From positions 28,092-92,091 of the forward strand of contig JAADVB010000049.1 in the NCBI GenBank assembly GCA_023334545.1: a stretch of DNA of 64,000 bases, written 5' to 3'. The stretch's first letter is position 1, and every line of letters starts with the position of its first letter. Origin of the DNA: Salisapilia sapeloensis CBS 127946. Lineage: Eukaryota; Protista; Oomycota. The position numbers were made by a program, and so were the translations under genes. Under the pieces are notes generated by a model. It did not search any database. It worked only from the letters and a program-made list of their open reading frames with translations, and was not told the DNA's origin. Shown piece after piece: positions 5,481-52,617 of the stretch.

Positions 5481-7175
5481 TCAAATCTCTTGGGCTGATA
5501 CGCTCTTGTCTTCGGCAATCTTGGTTCGTTTCGCACTCGGATCTTCTTCCAACTTCATAAACTCAGTCGCAGTGCCCAGAACCTCTGGCTCCTCTCGCTG
5601 CTTGCACGTCCTCTTGTTATGACCTTTAACGCCACACACGCTGCAACGCAGCTTGGAGCCTTTCGCAGACCCAGGCGTTTGCGTCATCTGTGCCACCTTC
5701 CGAGGTCTACCTCTGCTCACAACCACCGGAAACGGTTTCGTACTCTGGTCGCTCTCAACACGCTCCACATCCACAGGTGTGACACGACCTGCATACAGTG
5801 TCTGGAGCGTCGTCAAGAGGAACATGGGCGGGATACCTGCCTGCGTCGACTCTGTATTAGCATTCAGAGCCATGTACACATGCAAACAAGGAAAGTGAGA
5901 TGCATCGTACTCGCCACAAGAGCACGTCTTGAGCGCAATGTCCACGACTCGTTGCCTACCAGTCGCTTGTTCAATCACTTCAAACTTACTTTCATCCACC
6001 TGTGCGACGCTGTAGCCTGGTGCTTGGATTTGATACTCCTTCAATCGCTGCTGATACTCCTCTGGGTACTCCGTTCCAGTCTGAGCATACTTTTTCGAGC
6101 GAAGGAAGAGAAGACGAGCTACGCGCGAGATCCAGGACACAAAGAACATGAGAGGAGACTTGTCACAAATCGATTCGAGAAAAACGAGGAACGAGCCGTC
6201 GGTCGCATCGTCATTCGCTTCTGACGTAAGGAAGAGCTCCGTCTTGTTCGAGACGCTGACGGCCGGATACTCTCGAGAGATAGCGGCATCCAACACACCT
6301 CCTCGATTGTGCACGATCGAAAGCTGCCCGTCCAATCCGTTCAGCGCCGCTTCTTTCAGTTCACGCAAGAAGAAGTTCCAATTCGCTTCGTTCTCTTCAC
6401 TAACAACCGCCAGTGCGATTGGAACGTGGTTACGCATCGCATCTTGTGTGATAGCAGACAGCACGATGCCACCAAAGCTCGAGGTCAGTCGGAACATGCT
6501 CAAGAGTACACTCGAGCGGCAGTATCGAACACTCTCTTGCAACGCACTCGGACATAAGAACGCTCTCGCCATCACACTACCTTCTCCTTGCTCCTCTGTG
6601 TCGAACGCAATGCGACTACCCGGATTCTCCCTTTCAAACGCCTCCAAGTAGCCTTGTACACGCGAGAAGGATGTGCTTTCATCCTGCTTGAGCTCCCTCC
6701 GATATGCCTTGAGAGCCCTCCAAGCCGTCAAGTAGTTGGCTGACAGACCGAATTGCTCCCTAATCAAGTCAGCCATGTCCTTTGGTGTCACGTCCGTGCC
6801 GGGCAAGTACGGTCGCGTCGCCTCCATGAGAGCTGAGGCAGACAGAAGCTTTGCATTCGACTGCACGGCGGTACAATTCGGCGAGTGCTCGAGGTTCACT
6901 CGTACGACATAGACCCGTCCATCCGCTCGTTGCGTCCCTGTCACGTAGAATGGGCATAGTTCTTCCGAAGGAACTCCCTGCTGCTTCATGGATTTCCACA
7001 TCGGGCACCGTGCATCGAGACGTTTCGGACTACTGTGGTTGACATGGTATGGCGTATTATAGCGCACCGAGATGACCTTGAGATCCTTTCGTAGTTCCCC
7101 CATATTCGCATAACTTTCCTGGAAAGGAGGCTGCGGCGCTGGCAGTCTCCGATTCCGCTTCCGAACTTCTTCCAT
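5481..7175 (-). CDS. MULE (Mutator-like) transposase-derived protein with SWIM finger and CCHC knuckle; catalytic DDE apparently lost
   Basis: Intact ORF with likely start MEEVRK at 7175. MULE-like segments AFLCP, VPIALAVVSEENEANWNFFL; SWIM CSCGEYDASHFPCLH; RGRPRK; knuckle CSVCGVKGHNKRTC. No TIRs or TSD seen. Confidence 0.8.
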   Translation of the reverse strand: MEEVRKRNRRLPAPQPPFQESYANMGELRKDLKVISVRYNTPYHVNHSSPKRLDARCPMWKSMKQQGVPSEELCPFYVTGTQRADGRVYVVRVNLEHSPNCTAVQSNAKLLSASALMEATRPYLPGTDVTPKDMADLIREQFGLSANYLTAWRALKAYRRELKQDESTSFSRVQGYLEAFERENPGSRIAFDTEEQGEGSVMARAFLCPSALQESVRYCRSSVLLSMFRLTSSFGGIVLSAITQDAMRNHVPIALAVVSEENEANWNFFLRELKEAALNGLDGQLSIVHNRGGVLDAAISREYPAVSVSNKTELFLTSEANDDATDGSFLVFLESICDKSPLMFFVSWISRVARLLFLRSKKYAQTGTEYPEEYQQRLKEYQIQAPGYSVAQVDESKFEVIEQATGRQRVVDIALKTCSCGEYDASHFPCLHVYMALNANTESTQAGIPPMFLLTTLQTLYAGRVTPVDVERVESDQSTKPFPVVVSRGRPRKVAQMTQTPGSAKGSKLRCSVCGVKGHNKRTCKQREEPEVLGTATEFMKLEEDPSAKRTKIAEDKSVSAQEI

Positions 7176-7430
7176 ATCGAGAATAGAAACGCTTGATTTG
7201 TGGCCAAAAAGGGAGAATTGAAAAACTAACCGGATACACAACGTCATAAAGAACAAAAATGAGCGCCCGACAGGATGCCGCGAGCGACGCCGCGAGCCAC
7301 CACAGTCGAAGCAGCAGTGCGAGCAGTGGCGTACACCCGAACGTCCATTCGGGTACCTATCTACCCTTACATTCGACAGGCACCGTAGACTAAATAGTAG
7401 ACATTAGGACGGTACTCGCCGTCGACGAGC

Positions 7431-23713: not shown

Positions 23714-26005
23714 CTACATGCCTCTAGACTTCTGTGAAAGGTACTTCCACCATGCAGTCGGATGCAGACGCGACAGCGTAGTCGTAGCAAGCACAAGACA
23801 AGCCATTGCCAGTACACTCTTATTACTCGCCGTCCGCATCAGTCGAGCGAACGATGCCTTGGATACATTTCTATGAGCAATATACAAGACTAGAAGCACC
23901 ACTCCACTTTCCACCACCAACAAGCGAGCAGAGCGTCGTGTCAGCGTCTCATCTCGCTGCTGTCGCTTCTGCTTCATCACCGCTACCCACGATAGCATAT
24001 CCGAGAAATCCACGACGCCATCTTTATTAAAATCCATCGCATCCAAGTACTCTTTCGCCCGTTCTTCCGTCACGAACGAACCTAAAGAGTTGCGGACAAA
24101 CTGCCGAATGTCTTCCGAAGATAGACGCATGCTACCACTCACATCTATAAGGGTGAACATGAACTTGAGCATATCCAATTCCGATTGCTCCAACAGCTAC
24201 AGATATACTTTAGTCGGCGTTTTAGCTTATATACAAAGTACCTTACCGTCTCTCCTGTCTCCTTCTGCTGGTGCTTTACCCATGCACTAGCAACATCCGA
24301 CAGTACACGTCGTCTAGCATGCGGATGCATCTCATTCGTCGTCTGCCGCATCTCATCCACTACATAAACAATCAGAGCGTGCTCTTTACTATAAAAGACA
24401 TTGCTAGGCGTACTGGATCCTCTTGGCGGTTGAAGATTCGAGAGCTGGTCGCTACCAGAGACGACAGCCACGTTCGTACCACGCGGTTCTTTACTAAACT
24501 CTAGGATCGTATCAAAGATCTTTCTACTAGCAGGTAGAAACGGTAGTTTGGTCATAAACTCTCGCCAGATATCGACGCCACGACCTTCCGGAAAGATTAA
24601 TGCTGGTGGTGGATGGTCCACTGCACTGACTTCCTTCAATTCCCAACGACACTCGTCGTTATTTAGATGCAAGTACGCAGCCTAACGACGTGCTAAATAC
24701 AATGAAAAGTCATCTATCAAAAGGATCGCTTACCTTATTTCCGTGACGATCGCAATAGTTTGGACTGGAGAAGACTGTGAGTAAAGGAGGCATCGTCGTG
24801 GACGATCGACGATCCATCGCTTCCCACTTGCTTCCATGGAAATGGATCTTATACCCATGCTCCTCGAACTCGTGCGCTCGGACCATTGCTACAAGCTCAT
24901 TCTTCTCCAGAAACTGGAAGAGTGCTGCAGCGTTAAAACTATAGGAGCACCCGCGAACCTATCAAGACGATCAGCATATCGTCACAAGCTACTCAAGATT
25001 TCATCATACCGCATTTGTCTCCCATTGTGGCTCTCCATTCGTATCTACACAAATCCATGTCGATCTTAATACCGAAAGACAAGCTAAGCTACTAGGAATA
25101 TGTTTAAATGTACCTTGGACGTTCGGATCAGACCATACTAAGTCACATAAGAGTCCGGAATGCGGGATTTCTCGAAATCGATCTAGATTCTGAACGTCTT
25201 GTAGCGTCTTGAGATCTGGAGAGATACCTCCATGCACGCAGAAGAGCATCCCTTCGTACGTACGCGTTAATGCTGCAATCGGCATCGCTCGAAAGCACGA
25301 GATAAAGTGATAGTACACTGCAATCCCGTATTTGGCTCGACCTATTAGCCATTAGCTATCTCTTTATGCTGTGATTACAAGGCAAAGAGCAGTACATTCT
25401 CCTCGGAAGCCGTAGAAGCTAGAGATAGCTTCACATTCATGATTCCCACGCAAGAGAAATACGTTGAAGGGGTACTAGCATCAGATATGGTAAGACACTT
25501 CAAGATAGCGAGTACTCAAGTCTCATACACGCAGCTTTAAGAGCAGTAGATACAGCATAACTTCGCATGAGAAAGCTCCACGGTCTGTATAATACTCCAT
25601 TTAATAGACATGTATACTAGTCGTGCTATATCCAAACGTACCGATGTAATCGCCCAAGAAGAGTAGCTTGACACGGCCATCTAGACGCTCTCGATGAGCT
25701 ACAAGCAAGCATCGCTAACGCTCCTAGACCATACCTGCAATTCGATCCAAGCCGATACTATCGATCCGCGCGATAAGATCGTAGAACTGACCGTGGAAAT
25801 CCCCAAAGATGTAGGTTGAAGTGCCATCCACGTGCACTACATTCGGTTCGTCCGACAGCACGTCTTTCGCAGCATGAATGAGAGCAACTACATCTCCTAC
25901 ATCCAGGAGCTCCTGATCTTCCAACCGACTCTGTGTAGCTGCCACCGAAAGCCCCACACCAGACGACCGGCGGCGATGGCGTAGCTGCTTGTCTTCCTTG
26001 TCCAT
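23714..26005 (-). CDS. PPP phosphatase, calcineurin A (PP2B)-like, fused to a C-terminal EF-hand pair and hydrophobic tail; ~9-10 exons
   Basis: Hand-spliced motifs in order: GDFHGQ, LFLGDYI|[45 protein letters not shown]|AAYL, KLPF; then ..ETGET|[22 protein letters not shown] and [12 protein letters not shown]. 5' end uncertain. Confidence 0.8.
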
Positions 26006-26261: not shown

Positions 26262-27037
26262 CTACTCGTCGGATCCAAAGTCAGCGTTCAAAATGTCGTC
26301 CAGTAGATCGCTTTTCCCGTCAATATCATCCAAGTTGTCATCAGGAAATGGTACAATTTCATCTTCATCGGAATCAGATGCGTTTTTGCTCGTAAATGTT
26401 GGCAACGGTGCGTCTTCATCCCATGGCAAGACGTCGTCTTCCGAGTCCAAACCATCGACAATGCTATCGGTCACTTGCTCCAGGATCGATGGTACCTCTT
26501 CATCTGGCACCACCGGATCTTCCGAAGGGATACCTCCAGCAGCATACTCGACCTCCTATTCCATGCTTATTAGCACATAACTTTTAGTTGCAATCAAAAA
26601 TAAGCATACTTCGTCCTCGGATGGTCGTGTCGAGCTAATCTTTTCACTTGACTTTGTAGATAATCGAGCTTGCTTTCTCTTCTTATGAGACTTGACAACG
26701 TCTTTCGGTGTCGCTGCAACATCTTTCGCAGGAGTGTCATTTCGATCCTGGTTCGAGATATCTCCAAGTGCACGTCTGCTACGTATACTACTTTAGTACC
26801 CAGACTATTCTTCATTATGCAAAGAGCGTACCTCTTCTTGGACTTTGGTGTCTTGGCCTCATTCAGTGGCACTTCCACCAGCTTGTTGCACGTCGAAGAA
26901 CGTTTTTGTGGCGCTAGATACAGCTTTAAGAACATGCACACCCAAGAACATATTCGTAGGATATCATAGTTACTCTGAGACTTGTTGCTACGCGCTGGTG
27001 TCGGCGTATTCTCCTTACTTGCCGCCAACGAGCTCAT
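26262..27037 (-). CDS. 202-aa APC/C substrate, securin-like candidate (4 exons; introns 26914-26973, 26779-26831, 26556-26609)
   Basis: Three 53-60 nt GT-AG introns splice to one 609-nt frame: SKENTP (KEN box), RRALGDISN (D-box), TPQK/TPAK CDK sites, EEVEYAAG, acidic C-terminal half. The coding model is well supported; the securin identity is inference. Confidence 0.65.
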
Positions 27038-27189: not shown

Positions 27190-28307
27190 ACTACGTACAT
27201 TGTAAAGGTCGCTTACGCTTCTTAGTGATATGTGTACAGTGAGGTCAGTCACGGAAGAAATGCAGTGAAAGCAAATCTAATGACGTACTGATAGGCGATA
27301 GATGTACTGCATTATCCAGTTTAGCTCTGATCTCCTTCCTAATTTGCATGCACCCAGGTGTGATACGCTTAAAAGTTGAATTGGAGTCCTCTTCGAGGGT
27401 CGCTAAAGATTGGAAAATCGCTATGACGTTTAGATATGTAGTTCAGCAGTGAAGTTTCCACTCAATATAATCAATCCCCGCTGCCTTTCATCCGGAGCTC
27501 AGACACCAAATAAACTCTATTTAGACCTCCACCAGAGTTGTAAGCATAAATTTATCATTGGAATGACAGCAATGCATCCTCACTCTAATACAAGACGATC
27601 TGCGCTCTACGGATGATTGCATCGTCCAACAAGTCTCTACCTACTTTCTGCACACAAATTGACTGCTACTGATGAACGACAACTACACATAAGCTATATA
27701 ACTAGCCAAAAGCTCGTACACGATGTGCAAGTACACTTTGCAGCTAATCAACATGTCAGTCTGCTTGTTGGCGACTTGCATTGCGCTATAGAAATAGACT
27801 ATTTTCACCGATAAAAGTCTCTCTGCCTTTCATCTCATCCTACCACTGAACATTCCAACACAAATGCAACACATCCTAGTAAATGCAGCATCTCCATGTT
27901 TATGCAAAGCATCCACCAAAGTCCTTCTACTTGCCACCATTAAGATCCTTCATCATGCGCGTAACGTGGAAGAGCAGAGTCGATCGGTGAGCAGCCTTCT
28001 GACGATCCGCCTACAACAACAAATTCGCCACAAACACATCAGTATCTTCCATAACAAGTCACATAGACATCAGACATACCTTGGCTGTGAGCACCTGCTC
28101 CAGTCGTCTAGACTCTCGCTTGCACTGAAGCTCGTCAAAGTCATTCCGCTCCAACGCATCCATGAATGCAATGAATTCCGGCTGTCCTTCATTGCTCTCA
28201 CGTACCGTACGCAGGGTCATGCGCTTGATATGCACGGGTGAGATGGCCTTACGCACCGTCATGACCGTCCGATTGCTCGACTTTGAGCCTTTAATTGTCA
28301 AATACAT
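27190..28307 (-). CDS. Probable intron-rich hypothetical gene, structure unresolved
   Basis: The 82-aa ORF 28059-28307 splices in frame to ADRQKAAHRSTLLFHVTRMMKDLNG. Further exon-like blocks with splice signals run to ~27190, and it is head-to-head with the M16 peptidase. Downstream frame not resolved. Confidence 0.35.
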
Positions 28308-28390: not shown

Positions 28391-31300
28391 ATGATGCAGC
28401 AATCGCCAGCAGACCGGAAGCAATATCGGCGTCTGACGCTGCCGAATGGACTCGAAGCTGTTCTCATATCCAAGCAGGGGATGTATCATGAGCATGAGAA
28501 AAATGGTAGTGAGAATGAAGAGCAGGAGAGTGATGGAGATGAGGAAGAGTCGGATGATAGCGATGGCAGTGACGAAGAAGACGATGAAGAAGCTCCAGCA
28601 GCCGAACTAGCTGGTGCATGTCTCTCAGTCGGTGTGGGTAGCTTTTCCGACCCGGATGACTTGCCTGGACTAGCCCATTTCCTCGAGCACATGCTATTCA
28701 TGGGTATTCTTCTGCCTCGTAGACGGAAGAATCTCTTGTATCTTATACAGCAAATGTAAATAGGAAGCAAAAAGTATCCCGGAGAAAACGAAATGGAAGC
28801 TTTTCTAAGTGCGCATGGTGGCTACAGCAATGGCAGCACTGACAACGAGATCACACAGTTCACATTCGAAGTGTCTCCAGCGCACCTCGAGACGGCGCTG
28901 GACATGTTCGCCAACTGTTTCGTCGATCCGCTCATTCTGTCCGAAGCTATGGAAAGAGAACTGTCAGCCGTCGAATCAGAGTTCGTCCAAGCTACGCAGA
29001 GTGACCAAGTCCGCTTCGATGTACGTTCTTTTCTCCCATCTACTCTCCCTCCTCTTCTTACAATGATATCCGTCTATAGCAAGTCCTAAGTGCAATATCC
29101 AATACGGATCATCCGTATCATAAATTTGGATGGGGCAATCGTGTCAGTCTACTCGATCTTCCTCGTGAAAAAGGCATAGACGTCCGACAAGCCATGGTGG
29201 ACTTTTACAACAAGTACTACTCTGCCAACGTCATGAAACTAGTCGTATGTGGAAAAGACGCTTTAGATGACATGGAAGCATGGGTTACCAAGTCCTTTTC
29301 CAACATCCCTAATCGAAAGGTCTCTGTTCCGACGTTTGATTCCTTTGGCTCTCCATTCGTAACGCAGCTACCGACAGTCTGTCGTGTTGTCCCTGTGCGT
29401 GAGATCCACCGGTTAGAGCTGTCCTGGATGCTTCCTCCAGTCTTTGGTCTTCACCATCAAAAGCCGGAAGACTACATTGGCAGTCTCCTCGGCCACGAAG
29501 CTGAAGGCTCTGTCTTCTCCACTTTAAAAGAACGTGGATGGATCACCGCTCTATCAGCTGGTGTTGATCGCACAGATGGAGGTGACTGCGGTACGTTTGG
29601 TACGAGATTCGGTATCACGATGCGCGTGACGGAGGAAGGGATGACGCATTGGGAAGACGTAGTCGCCGTCGTCTTCTCCTACTTGTCCATCATCCGATCG
29701 AGTGGCTTCCCAGAGTGGGTATTTGACGAATTAAAGGCACTCGCAGCCATCTCGTACCAGTTTTATGAAGAACGAGATATCGTCGAGACGTGTGAAGAGC
29801 TCGCACAGGTCATGCAAGATATCTATCATGTCGACACGAATGAGGTCCTTCAGTACGAGCTCTTCCAAGGCTCCTTCCAACGACAACTCGTGTCCGATCT
29901 GATCGAATGCCTCGTACCATCCAATCTTGTCGTCGCCTTACTCTCTCCTTCCTTCGCAGACGATCCGACCTTCCTCAAGGAACAGCAGCTAGAACCGTGG
30001 TTTAACGTAGCTTACACCAAGCAAAACGTCCGGTCGGAAGCATACGACAAGTGGATGTCACCACCAGACATCTCGAGTATGCACCTCCCACGCCCCAACC
30101 TCTTCGTTCCACATGACTTTACTCTCGTCGACTCGTCTGCTTATGAAGACTTGAGCGCCCACGAGACCAAGTTTGGGAAGCTCTGGTTCAAACCAGATCG
30201 GCAGTTCCAGACACCTCGAGCCAACGTCTGTCTGCTGTTGAGTCTCCCAAGCATCCTCCACAGTCCTGAAAATGTCATCTTGACAGAGCTCTTCGCACAG
30301 CTCTCCAAGGACGCCTTATTAGAACACGCGTACGATGCAGACGTCGCCCACCTCAAGTACGAACTGTCTCGAAACGGATGCGCCTTGGAGCTCGTCTTTG
30401 GCGGCTTCAACGACAAGCTACATGTCCTCGTCGATGTTGTGATCCAATCAATCTTCTCCGGAGGCTTTGCCAAAGGAAGGTTTGACGTTATCAAGCAGGA
30501 AATGCTTCGGACGTACAAGAATGCTGTGATCAAACCTGGTCGCAAGTCAGATTACCTCCGTCTCCAAGTACTTGACACCACAGCCTTCCCTCGCGCAGAC
30601 CTCATCCAAGTGCTTGAGAACGCAACGTTTGAACAGCTACAGACGTTCGTGTCGACAATACTCTGGACGTCAAACGTCTACCTTCAGACACTTGCGCATG
30701 GTAACCTTCGTCTAGAAGAAGCAAAAGGCATTTGCGACCTCGTGGAGAGTCATCTAGAAAAACTATCTACCCCTCTTCCATTCGATAAGCTTCCCTCTCG
30801 GTCTGTCACTATAATCCCACAGACAGCAAGTGGGTATCTTCTAGAAGCACCAAGTGAGCACAGTGAAGACAGGAATTTGTTCGTGCAAGCGTACTATCAG
30901 GTAGGAGCCTTCAACCTGCGAGACATGGCGCTGCTAGATTTACTCCAGAAGATCATGGAAGAGCCGCTCTTCGATACGCTTCGTACGAAACAAGAGCTCG
31001 GATACGAGGTCTCATGTGTTGTGCGAGATACATTTGGCGTCCTTGGCTTTGGCGTCCAGGTTCAGTCGTCCTTGTTCCAAGCCAATTACATCGATACATG
31101 CATCCAAGACTTTTTAACGGACTTTGAGTACGCTATTCGGAATATGAGTGATCAATTGTTCCAGGATCATGTCGATGCCGAAGTCGTCTATCGACTCGGT
31201 CCAGACCACAACTTGAGTGAGACGACGCAGCGAGTCTGGCGAGAGATCTGTCTCCGTCGATACGAGTTCGATCTGAATGCCAAGTTGGCGCACGAGTATA

Positions 31301-31503
31301 AGACGGCGACGAAAGAGGAGCTAGCGGACAAATACAGGCTCTGGATTGTCGAGCAAGCTAGGAAACTCATCGTGCAAGTGGTGCCTCAAGATCAGTTGCA
31401 AGGTGGAGACAAGAACAATGAAGAGAGCGGAGTGAATCCGGAACGTATCGACGACCTGTACGCTTTCAAAGCCACATTAAAGTCGTACTCGGATAGCAAG
31501 TAA
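28391..31503 (+). CDS. M16A metalloendopeptidase, nardilysin/insulysin-like (multi-exon)
   Basis: DRKQYRRLTLPNGL, acidic insert, GSFSDPDDLPGLAHFLEHMLFMG (inverted HxxEH), EAMERELSAVESEF, FYNKYYSAN, KLWFKPD, EPLFDTLRTKQELGY. Confidence 0.92.
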
Positions 31504-49585: not shown

Positions 49586-52500
49586 ATGGCCGAATCCATG
49601 GATGTCGACCACGATATGCTCGATACCAGTGCTCCACCACAAGTAGGAGAAAGGGTACTCGTCTTCAGTAAGCATGCAGGGGTATGTATACCATCTAGTA
49701 GACATTGCATCAGCTCTAGGAAGTGCTCAATATCGTATAGGTCATCCAATACGTTTCATCTGATCGACAGCTCATCGGAGTGCATCTCGACCGACCGTAT
49801 GGAGACAGCGATGGCATGGTCAATGGGGACATACTATTTGAGTGCAAAGAACATTATGGCGTCTTTGTCCGACCAGATCAGCTCCAAGTACGCTCTCTCT
49901 CTCTCTCGACACTAGTAGATCGATCTTGCTAATAATATCCCATGCAGCGCTTCTCCCATGAAGATGCCGCTGCATGTGTACTGCAAAGCACGTGGCGAAA
50001 GTGGACTGCCATCCAAAAGGTTCTTGCTACATAATCGACAAGACTATATCTCGACACTCATCTCCATCCTCTACTCCAGTTCCGACGTCTCGTAAACATC
50101 CAGTCGTGGAACGTCCTAGACAACAATGAAGAGCAGCTCAATCTCATCCGGAATGAAAAGTTCAAGTCCGCGGAACAAGCACTTACTCTTCTCGCGAACA
50201 AGGTACATTTCTACTAGTCACCTCTCTACATCCTACTAACACCTGCCTAGAAACCACTGCATAGAAGTCCTTCCGTCGCCGCCGTGGAGAGCATCCAGAT
50301 CAGTCCAGACTACACTGGTCCACACATCCAATGGCCTCTAACGATCGAAAACGTCATGAGCCTTCTAGAGTCCTTTAAAACAGGCGAAATACTGCATTCC
50401 AAGTACCTTCTCCAAGTCATCAAAGAGGCCATTACGATCCTATCTCCACGTCCGACACTCCAAGAAGTGCAGCTCAAGGAAGGCGAGACGATAACTGTCG
50501 TAGGTGACCTCCATGGCCAGCTCCAAGACCTCTTTACGATCTTTTCACTCAACGGTCTTCCGTCTCCTACGAACAAGTACCTTTTTAACGGCGACTTTGT
50601 CGATCGAGGACGATATGGCACGGAAGTCGTCTTGTGTCTCCTCTGTTTCCTCATCTTATATCCTGACTCGATCTACCTCAATCGTGGTAACCACGAGTCG
50701 AGAAACCAGAACACCTGGATGGGCTTTGAAGACGAACTCTGGTCCAAGTACACTGGCTTCGACGCCGACGACGATCCAGAGCGAGCGAACTACATCTTTG
50801 AACGTTTCCAATCGCTATTCGAATCCCTTCCTCTCTGCTGTATCTTGCAAGATAAAATCTTCGTCGCCCATGGAGGTCTCTTCTCTCGAGATAACGTCAC
50901 GCTAGCGCACTTGCGTGCCGTGAAACGCAAGCGAGAGCCTCCTCTTCATCAGACGAACTTTGAAGACAAGATCTATGAAGACTTGCTCTGGAGTGATCCA
51001 CGTCCGATTGCCTCGAGGCAACCGTCTGAACGAGGAGCTGGCGTCGAGTTCGGTGTCGAAGTCACAAACAACTTTTGCATCGTGAATAAAGTCGCACTCA
51101 TCATCCGGTCGCACGAGTGTGTCCCAGAAGGCTTCGAGATCCTCCATGGCGGACGTCTCATCACGCTCTTCTCTGCTTCGAGATACTGTGGGACGCAAAT
51201 GAATAAAGGAGCTTTCCTAACGCTCGGACCGAGTCTCCAGCCAGAGATACAACAGTTCTACGCCCACCCGATCGACGAAAGCGCGTTTAAACTACCAGAA
51301 GACACAGAGCTACAGAACACTTTGGAGGAAGACACGCTCCGGATGATTGCTGAACGCATCTGCGACCATCGTCCGTCACTCTTCTGGTACTTTACCCAGC
51401 ATCAGGAAGAAGACAAGGGCACAGTCCCGAGACTCGTGTGGGCCGAAGCACTCAAGTCTGTGCTGCAGCTCGACCTGCCGTTCTTGACGTACCAAGCTCG
51501 ACTGGCAGATGCAGATGATGACACTGGACGGATCAACTACTCTCGTTTCTTAACGAGGTATCGTATCGAGAATGACGCTGTCGACAAGAACGGATGGCAG
51601 GAGAGTCTCATCGCTCGTATCTGTAAGAAACTCTTCCGAGCCATGGGCGCAGGGGACGTCCAGCAAGCTTTCAAGGTCTTTGATACCGACCAGAATGGAT
51701 ACATCGAGTACGAAGAGTTCATGTCGACGTTGAAGAAGATGGACACGGGGCTCGCGGATCAACAGGTCTATGAACTCATGCGCACAGCCGACGCGAATGA
51801 CGACGGACGGATCGACTTTTCTGAATTCGCACAGCGCTTTGAACTCATCTTTACACGCGCCAAAAACGCACCACCGTCGCCTAGTAGCAACTCTTCTAGC
51901 CTTGACTCACCCTCGGCCATGGCAGTGGATAAAGACAGCACTCGTCCGCCATCTCCTCTAGATAAGAAGGAGTCTGGCATGAGACGAAGGGTGTCGACTA
52001 TCGACGAGTTCACGTTCACGCCGACACCGGCGACGGACGTGGATATCGATACCATGGCTGTGCTTGTCAAGATCGGACGCACGCTCTTTGCCATGGACGG
52101 ATCGCTCCAAGATCACTTCACACGCTTTGACATCAACCAAGATGGTGTCCTCCAGCGAGAAGAGTTCGCTCAGGCGCTCCAGCAGCTAGGGTTTACGCTG
52201 TCACCAGATCTCTTTTCGAAAGTCATGACGGCTGTCGACACGGATGCAGGCGACTCGATCGACTACAAGGAGTTCGTGTCAGCGTTTGGCATCCAAGACC
52301 TCAAGGAGAGAGACGGCGGCGGGATGACGTGGCAGAGCTCTGTCCTCCAACAAGTCTCGAATGTCCTGTATCAGCATCGTATCCACATCCGAAACGCCTT
52401 CCGGATGTTCGATCGCGGGAACACAGGATACATTAGTAAAGATGAGTTCCGGACGGGCATCAAGACGTTTAATGCCGTGCTCAACTCGCCGTTATCAGAC

Positions 52501-52617
52501 GATCAGGTGGAAGAGCTACTTGACTTTCTCGACACGAATAACGATGGTGTCGTCAGCTATCGCGAGTTCCTAGATGGGTTCAGAGTCGTCGACGTGCAGA
52601 TGGTGGAAGAAGAGTGA
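49586..52617 (+). CDS. PPEF: PPEF/rdgC-type Ser/Thr phosphatase with N-terminal IQ motif and six or more EF-hands
   Basis: AAACVLQSTWRKW IQ-like exon; VGDLHGQ, FNGDFVDRG, NRGNHE, AHGG, IRSHE, FSASRY; EF loops DTDQNGYIEYEE, DANDDGRIDFSE, DINQDGVLQREE, DTDAGDSIDYKE, DRGNTGYISKDE, DTNNDGVVSYRE. Confidence 0.9.

Follow-up and report, generated by a model that had tools for sequence, protein, structure and literature searches.

A four-exon gene on the minus strand

The window analyzed here is the whole of a 64,000-nucleotide (nt) stretch of DNA from the oomycete Salisapilia sapeloensis CBS 127946 (GenBank assembly GCA_023334545.1, contig JAADVB010000049.1, positions 28,092 to 92,091 of the forward strand). 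Its minus strand carries, at 27037-26262, a candidate gene that an earlier reading of the letters (the original prediction) had put forward as a possible securin hidden among fragmentary reading frames. Securin is the brake on chromosome separation and an essential regulator of anaphase. The gene consists of four exons separated by GT-AG introns of 60, 53 and 54 nt, and splicing yields a coding sequence of 609 nt which encodes 202 amino acids (aa) without an internal stop. We were thus able to reproduce the predicted 202-aa frame with its introns of 53-60 nt, and the translation matches every fragment quoted in the prediction. The parts of the gene are listed below.

27037-27035, minus strand: start codon ATG, the earliest start after an in-frame stop
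26974..27037, minus strand: exon 1, 64 nt; ATG at 27037, then MSSLAASKENTPTPARSNKSQ; KEN codons at 27016-27008
26914..26973, minus strand: intron 1, 60 nt, GTAACT...CTAG; GC content 0.37, scores as non-coding
26832..26913, minus strand: exon 2, 82 nt; TPQKRSSTCNKLVEVPLNEAKTPKSKK(S); basic, with sites of the cyclin-dependent kinase (CDK) type
26779..26831, minus strand: intron 2, 53 nt, GTACGC...GTAG, phase 2; abuts the D-box at its 3' end
26610..26778, minus strand: exon 3, 169 nt; D-box RRALGDISN at 26777-26751, then a Lys/Arg/Ser-rich linker to a terminal SEDE
26556..26609, minus strand: intron 3, 54 nt, GTATGC...ATAG, phase 0, GC content 0.30; abuts EVE at its 3' end
26262..26555, minus strand: exon 4, 97 codons plus TAG; EVEYAAGG at 26555-26532 (proposed P6-P1-P2'), VPD at 26510-26502 and an acidic tail dotted with hydrophobic residues; putative separase-interacting half
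26264-26262, minus strand: stop codon TAG

A codon model trained on the Pfam-confirmed exons within the window gave the spliced coding sequence a log-likelihood of +0.11 bits/codon in the modelled frame versus -0.52 and -0.69 in the other two, and held-out open reading frames (ORFs) of the window displayed the same pattern. The GC content of the candidate introns is 0.30-0.38 versus 0.49 in the exons, and the introns score as non-coding. The adjacent phosphatase gene, in which we fixed the introns by means of the conserved catalytic motifs, contains three introns of 52, 54 and 57 nt with GTA.G donors and YAG acceptors, and the candidate introns are of the same class. Intron 3 is the only well-scoring route from the D-box to the exon that opens with EVE. 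Intron 2 carries a caveat, as its acceptors are in tandem (TAG followed by CAG, the second at 26776) and use of the second would leave one Ser codon fewer.

Permissive splice modelling can also assemble a chance or decayed ORF that has no function here. Many other GT-AG combinations at this position do stay open (27 solutions), and GC at third codon positions is 0.50 versus 0.64 in the housekeeping genes of the window. However, just the modelled frame scores as coding, the sizes and donors of the introns match those of the neighboring gene, and the exon number, intron positions and three conserved sequence islands are common to seven other species, three of which have an annotated gene at the locus (described below). 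Given the coding score, the shared introns and the conservation, we rejected a spurious ORF as very unlikely, the least probable of the explanations considered in this work. The gene model, including the introns as first proposed, is supported by the coding score, the GC content of the introns, the introns of the neighbor and the intron positions of the orthologues.

The codons for S-K-E-N (AGT AAG GAG AAT, 27008-27018, minus strand) hold a strong donor-like GTAAGG at 27018. Splicing from 27018 to the intron 1 acceptor at 26914 keeps the frame and would give a product without KEN, in which MSSLAA is joined directly to TPQKR. Such a KEN-less splice form may represent a regulated isoform or may have no significance.

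Orthologues beside nardilysin in other oomycetes

Searches with exon 4 returned nothing useful. A word-indexed search against 5.8 billion proteins gave no match within its length window, outside which proteins of about 200-300 aa fall, and an exhaustive phmmer search against 1.84 billion cluster representatives gave just two weak matches to acidic low-complexity sequence. We therefore sought orthologues by synteny, using the neighboring nardilysin gene (M16 peptidase; 28391-31503, plus strand). The best matches of this nardilysin are solely from oomycetes at 46-51% identity, and include Lagenidium, Phytophthora, Bremia, Peronospora, Plasmopara and Pythium. This places the window in an oomycete lineage apart from these genera. 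Nardilysin loci from nine assemblies were examined on the upstream side, beyond a conserved small gene of 82-89 aa.

Beside nardilysin and the small gene, the same minus-strand gene was found in seven other oomycetes: Lagenidium giganteum, Phytophthora ramorum, Phytophthora cactorum, Nothophytophthora sp., Plasmopara halstedii, Bremia lactucae and Pythium insidiosum. Each orthologue was rebuilt with canonical introns, and for P. ramorum and P. cactorum the rebuilt models equal the annotated products in length, at 263 aa and 283 aa, respectively. Every one of the eight genes is split into four exons by three introns at matching places. As in the window, intron 2 of the orthologues (phase 2) stops directly in front of the D-box, and intron 3 (phase 0) directly in front of the [DE][IV]E patch; P. 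ramorum has both at exactly the positions seen in the window, and in Lagenidium they are displaced by a single codon. KEN, D-box and the DIE-type patch each lie in an exon of their own, the latter two right at the exon start. Exon 2 of the window gene aligns with the TP[KR]R..F.IH.D exon of other oomycetes, although the F.IH.D motif itself is absent from the window protein.

The public records treat this gene unevenly. In P. ramorum, P. cactorum and Plasmopara a gene is already annotated at the locus, labelled just 'hypothetical' and without a Pfam family. Because these annotated orthologues exist, the phmmer result for exon 4 reflects a limit of sensitivity. A further word-indexed search, with the Lagenidium read-through from D-box to C-terminus, also gave no match. 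The orthologue is unannotated in the public records of Lagenidium giganteum, Pythium insidiosum and Bremia lactucae; the Nothophytophthora record merges it with the neighboring small gene as one 201-aa model; and the annotated 265-aa model of Plasmopara is probably spliced to an incorrect acceptor ahead of the D-box. Unannotated or mis-modelled orthologues lie at the following positions of the examined loci.

L001, 6405-7414
L005, 5966-6914
L006, 3420-4537
L009, 5400-7675

For P. infestans, no orthologue was found within 8 kb upstream of nardilysin, and the orthologue of this species must sit elsewhere or further from nardilysin. The upstream region of P. infestans (loci L002/L003, 4000-7500) holds transposon-like ORFs.

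Three conserved islands in a fast-evolving protein

The window protein shares 29-35% identity with the seven orthologues, and the two Phytophthora species share 64% with one another. Protein length varies from 202 to 298 aa. The proportion of nonsynonymous differences (pN) is 0.22-0.36 versus 0.66-0.78 for synonymous differences (pS). Since pN lies well below pS, the gene is under purifying selection, fast-evolving yet constrained.

Conservation is concentrated in three islands present in all eight species: KEN, RR[AV]L[GS]DISN and [DE][IV]ExA[YA]GG[LI]. The KEN box is invariant and always lies inside the first 7-18 residues, and all seven orthologues begin M..L...KEN. Within the third island the Glu, the Ala and both Gly are invariant across the eight species. 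Six species have D-I-E-[FLV]-A-Y-G-G as their patch, Lagenidium has E-I-E-S-A-Y-G-G and the window protein E-V-E-Y-A-A-G-G. The check proposed originally, that KEN, D-box and the EVE patch should emerge as the conserved islands among orthologues, was thus borne out in eight oomycetes. The island named at the time, 'EVEY', needs correction: its E-V/I-E part is kept, and the Tyr of the window protein is not conserved, the core being [DE][IV]ExA.GG. In every orthologue a basic N-terminal part (+11 to +19) gives way, at the third island, to an acidic C-terminal part (-19 to -33).

Degrons, phosphorylation sites and charge

Both degrons that had been predicted are present in the window protein. The KEN box occupies aa 8-10, is preceded by Ser (SKEN, aa 7-10) and is followed by T-P. 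The D-box RRALGDISN occupies aa 50-58 and fits RxxLx[D/E][hydrophobic]xN, the ten-residue consensus, down to a basic P2 and an acidic P6, the residues preferred there (PMC5717348). Six S/T-P sites fall within the first 75 residues, three of them full CDK sites (TPAR, TPQK and TPAK) and three minimal. Of the CDK sites claimed earlier, TPQK and TPAK are therefore full sites, and the 'TPK' sites are merely minimal. The predicted layout of a basic N-half and an acidic C-half with EVEYA at the junction is likewise evident, as net charge is +12 before residue 106 and -31 from EVEYAAGG onward; these eight residues are the first of exon 4 and stand right at the charge switch.

We compared motif counts in the six frames of the window with Markov-1 simulations. 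KEN occurs 9 times versus ~4 in the simulations and RxxLxx[ILVM]xN 8 times versus ~7.5. Both are common by chance, and KEN and a generic D-box alone carry little weight. The more specific patterns RxxLGDIxN and [DE][IV]ExAxGG each occur a single time in the window, with 0.01 and 0.00 occurrences expected, respectively. Additionally, the same combination of motifs is found at the syntenic position in eight species.

The D-box is of the cyclin-B type, and a truncated B-type cyclin, or a divergent sororin or shugoshin, could carry such a degron. For the latter two there appears to be a vacancy, as the supplementary table of a 2025 preprint (bioRxiv 10.1101/2024.01.07.573240) finds neither in oomycetes, with Sororin = 0 and Shugoshin = 0 for both P. 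infestans and Saprolegnia diclina, leaving their slots 'empty'. However, no Pfam cyclin box, Sororin domain or shugoshin motif was detected in any orthologue piece at E <= 10. A truncated cyclin is further opposed by the ORF itself, which closes with its acidic tail 257 nt before the ATG of the next gene. As for sororin and shugoshin, there is no FGF motif, the C-terminus is acidic and not a basic SGO motif, and no long coiled coil is predicted in the C-half. We rejected all three identities, which we regard as improbable, on the failure of their defining features.

An ABBA-like motif in Peronosporales

Five Peronosporales orthologues carry an ABBA-like motif, F[VK]IH.D, between KEN and D-box. 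In the rebuilt proteins it is found at the following residues.

L004, residues 38-43
L006, residues 40-45
L007, residues 28-33
L008, residues 39-44
L009, residues 36-41

The Lagenidium counterpart is FHVLSD, and the Pythium and window proteins are without an ABBA-like motif (pattern Fx[ILV][FYH]x[DE]). [quoted passage not shown]

The arrangement bears on a second identity for the protein, that of an APC/C substrate or pseudosubstrate regulator unrelated to separase (an inhibitor of Cdc20/Cdh1 in the manner of Acm1 or Mes1, or another mitotic regulator), in which the patch and acidic tail would bind some other partner. The conserved KEN box and perfect cyclin-B-type D-box suit such a regulator as well. 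Moreover, the F.IH.D motif in five of the eight orthologues has the form of the ABBA motif of cyclin A2, PAFTIHVDE (PMC6712056), and KEN, ABBA and D-box form the triad known from Acm1 and BubR1 (PMC5717348, which also gives the ABBA consensus). However, the ABBA-like motif is missing from the window protein, from Pythium and, strictly, from Lagenidium, and is therefore not part of the conserved core. Nor does a separase-unrelated regulator predict that the best-conserved element outside the degrons would be an exact fit to separase positions P6-P4 with an uncleavable P1, or that this element would open an acidic, disordered half. To our knowledge, Acm1 and Mes1 are lineage-specific fungal proteins without such a patch, which also speaks against this identity. 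We consider such a regulator the main, though rather unlikely, alternative to a securin.

Fit of the third island to the separase pseudosubstrate rule

Separase substrates carry (S/D/E)xExxR at P6-P1, and securins fill this site as pseudosubstrates: their P6-P4 residues form a 'DIE' motif, and P1 holds something other than Arg, as a rule a large hydrophobic residue (PMC10317155). In human securin the motif is 113-EIEKFFP, with an LPE docking motif at residue 130 where yeast has VPE (PMC6858450). The plant securin PATRONUS was recognized by Cromer et al. in 2019 from a KEN box and a D-box that are both conserved, a conserved patch with an invariant Glu and a separase-binding C-half (PMC6690013). 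In this register, P6 of the oomycete patch is acidic, P4 is Glu (E108 in the window protein) and P1 is Tyr in seven of the eight species and Ala in the window. The cleavable form [SDE]xExxR is absent from all eight orthologues, whose whole proteins were scanned.

The C-half that the patch opens has an acidic, low-complexity composition. AlphaFold2, run with the eight-sequence alignment, gave it a mean predicted local distance difference test score of 57.6 and a predicted template modelling score of 0.15, with just two short helices. The C-half is thus predicted to be disordered and without a fold, as expected of a segment that binds in extended form. In the window protein VPD follows 13 residues past the P4 Glu, a possible docking motif of the LPE/VPE kind.

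Because the conserved degrons and patch repeat the architecture by which PATRONUS was recognized, the patch fits the pseudosubstrate rule, a VPD that may act in docking follows it and the C-half has no predicted fold, the most likely function of the protein is that of a securin. We hold with moderate confidence that the gene, present across the oomycetes, encodes a small, intrinsically disordered cell-cycle protein of this kind. The original prediction had offered securin as a guarded candidacy alongside other APC/C substrates, and the sequence analysis supports that wording, with the patch in agreement with the published rule (PMC10317155, PMC6858450, PMC6690013).

Several observations weigh against the securin assignment. 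The residue aligned with P1 in the window protein is a small Ala, whereas a large hydrophobic residue fills this position in described securins (PMC10317155); this Ala is equally a point for the separase-unrelated regulator. A different register for the window protein (E106 as P4 and Y109 as P1) is possible, and the alignment gives it no support. The position of [LV]P[DE] is not conserved: five orthologues have one copy, a sixth has two and the remaining two have none. The copies lie 13, 51 or ~100 residues downstream of the patch, with ~0.5 per sequence expected from shuffles. KEN, ABBA and D-box together are also the layout of APC/C pseudosubstrate inhibitors, and short linear motifs can arise convergently, a warning given in the survey preprint (bioRxiv 10.1101/2024.01.07.573240). 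Lastly, no sequence-level link to securin families was found, a point that also favors the separase-unrelated regulator. Profile and single-sequence searches at permissive thresholds gave no PDB similarity and matched no securin chain. No Pfam match, including PF04856 (Securin), was obtained at E <= 10 for the C-halves of all eight orthologues, nor was there any for two read-throughs from D-box to C-terminus (Lagenidium and Plasmopara) or four D-box exons; these Pfam and PDB results cover pieces of the proteins. Securins are notoriously undetectable by sequence similarity, as they diverge too fast for homology search.

A proposed model for separase control

We infer separase binding, separase inhibition and dependence on the APC/C from the motifs, and propose the following mechanism. 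The acidic C-terminal half would bind along separase, with the [DE]-[IV]-E-x-A-[Y/A]-G-G patch lodged in the active site as a pseudosubstrate that cannot be cut (acidic P6, Glu at P4, P1 without Arg), and this block would restrain cohesin cleavage. At metaphase, APC/C-Cdc20 would recognize the N-terminal KEN box and D-box, with CDK phosphorylation of the flanking S/T-P sites probably tuning the use of these degrons. Ubiquitination and destruction of the protein would then release separase and allow anaphase to begin. On evolutionary origin we are slightly more reserved. [quoted passage not shown]

Neighboring genes

The small gene that adjoins nardilysin in every oomycete locus examined (82-89 aa) lies in the window at 28059-28307 on the minus strand. 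Its core reads ..HIKRMTLRTVRES.EGQPE...F..ALE..D[FY]DE..CKRE.., and no Pfam family was found for it. Further copies are placed as follows.

L001, 7883-8179
L002, 7567-7836
L004, 7486-7826

On the other side, the neighbors of the candidate gene in Peronosporales and Pythium include a MutS-family gene, a HORMA (Mad2-like) gene and SPC25, in the regions below.

L004, 1-5697
L005, 1-1508
L007, 1-5826
L008, 1-5214

The downstream neighbor is a PPEF phosphatase in the window and a zf-DNL gene in Lagenidium; synteny is conserved solely on the nardilysin side. Three further features of the window are given here.

23714-26005, minus strand: calcineurin-like Ser/Thr phosphatase with C-terminal EF-hands, PPEF-like, directly downstream of the candidate gene
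50284-52617, plus strand: second PPEF-like phosphatase with C-terminal EF-hands, plus a PPP5-type TPR region
5484-7256, minus strand: 591-aa ORF with MULE transposase and SWIM zinc-finger domains, a Mutator-like element or domesticated copy

Relation to prior work

We know of no validated securin outside animals, fungi and plants. Neither a description of an oomycete securin nor a study of separase regulation in oomycetes turned up in full-text literature searches. The earlier statement that no oomycete securin had been described is nevertheless no longer quite true. The survey preprint searched for securins across eukaryotes with motifs and hidden Markov models (KEN, D-box, LPE and the separase-interacting segment), and in its supplementary table Phytophthora infestans, Saprolegnia diclina, Hyphochytrium and Phaeodactylum each have Securin = 1 (bioRxiv 10.1101/2024.01.07.573240). 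Its oomycete candidates, given there as counts, are likely of the same gene family as the present one. Because that table counts oomycete securins, the gene described here is a divergent, locally unannotated securin candidate of a kind that is not itself new. The survey shares our search logic and clade; in the portion of its text available to us, the exon/intron layout, the invariant Gly-Gly, the ABBA-like motif and the lack of annotation do not appear (bioRxiv 10.1101/2024.01.07.573240).

The present work adds gene models in eight species, a conserved layout of introns relative to motifs, an invariant E-x-A-x-G-G core, a lineage-restricted ABBA-like motif and a record of annotation gaps. In practical terms, several public oomycete annotations lack the gene or merge it wrongly. 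A defined oomycete family would make the switch formed by separase, securin and the APC/C testable in the SAR (stramenopiles, alveolates and Rhizaria) supergroup, and would bear on whether securin dates to the last eukaryotic common ancestor. If the assignment is true, the family would provide the first experimentally tractable separase inhibitor in this supergroup and a handle on nuclear division in coenocytic pathogens of plants and animals.

Comparison with known securins and APC/C regulators

The candidate resembles the animal and fungal securins (human PTTG1, S. pombe Cut2, S. cerevisiae Pds1 and C. elegans IFY-1) in being small (~200-370 aa in the known proteins) and disordered, with an N-terminal KEN box followed by a D-box and CDK sites around these degrons. 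Also shared are a mid-protein patch of the form acidic-x-Glu with a non-Arg P1 (PMC6858450, PMC10317155), an acidic C-half dotted with hydrophobic residues and, possibly, a V/LP[D/E] soon after the patch; VPD lies 13 residues past the P4 Glu in the window protein and LPE 15 residues past it in human securin (PMC6858450). In contrast to those securins, the oomycete protein has no detectable sequence homology to them, including PF04856, its patch is followed by an invariant Gly-Gly and not by Pro, and the window species has Ala at P1. Human securin also has an NxLx(hydrophobic)E helix motif, of which the oomycete protein gives no evident counterpart. The C-halves of the Phytophthora proteins may have several short colinear patches in common with human securin, an impression given no weight in the assignment. 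In Cut2 and human securin, replacing P1 by Arg has been shown to make the protein a substrate of separase.

Acm1, Mes1, BubR1 and cyclin A2 likewise combine a D-box and a KEN box in a disordered region, and the Peronosporales F.IH.D resembles the cyclin A2 motif (PMC6712056). However, nothing in these proteins corresponds to the DIE-type patch and the long acidic tail, and the ABBA-like motif that would link them to the family is not conserved in the window protein.

The plant proteins PATRONUS and RSS1 offer the third comparison. Separase binding by PATRONUS has genetic, yeast two-hybrid, bimolecular fluorescence complementation and pull-down support, whereas the oomycete family is known from sequence alone, and a non-degradable PATRONUS mutant blocks the release of cohesin (PMC6690013). 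Like the oomycete protein, PATRONUS/RSS1 is fast-evolving, has no similarity to opisthokont securins and is recognizable by its architecture alone (PMC6690013).

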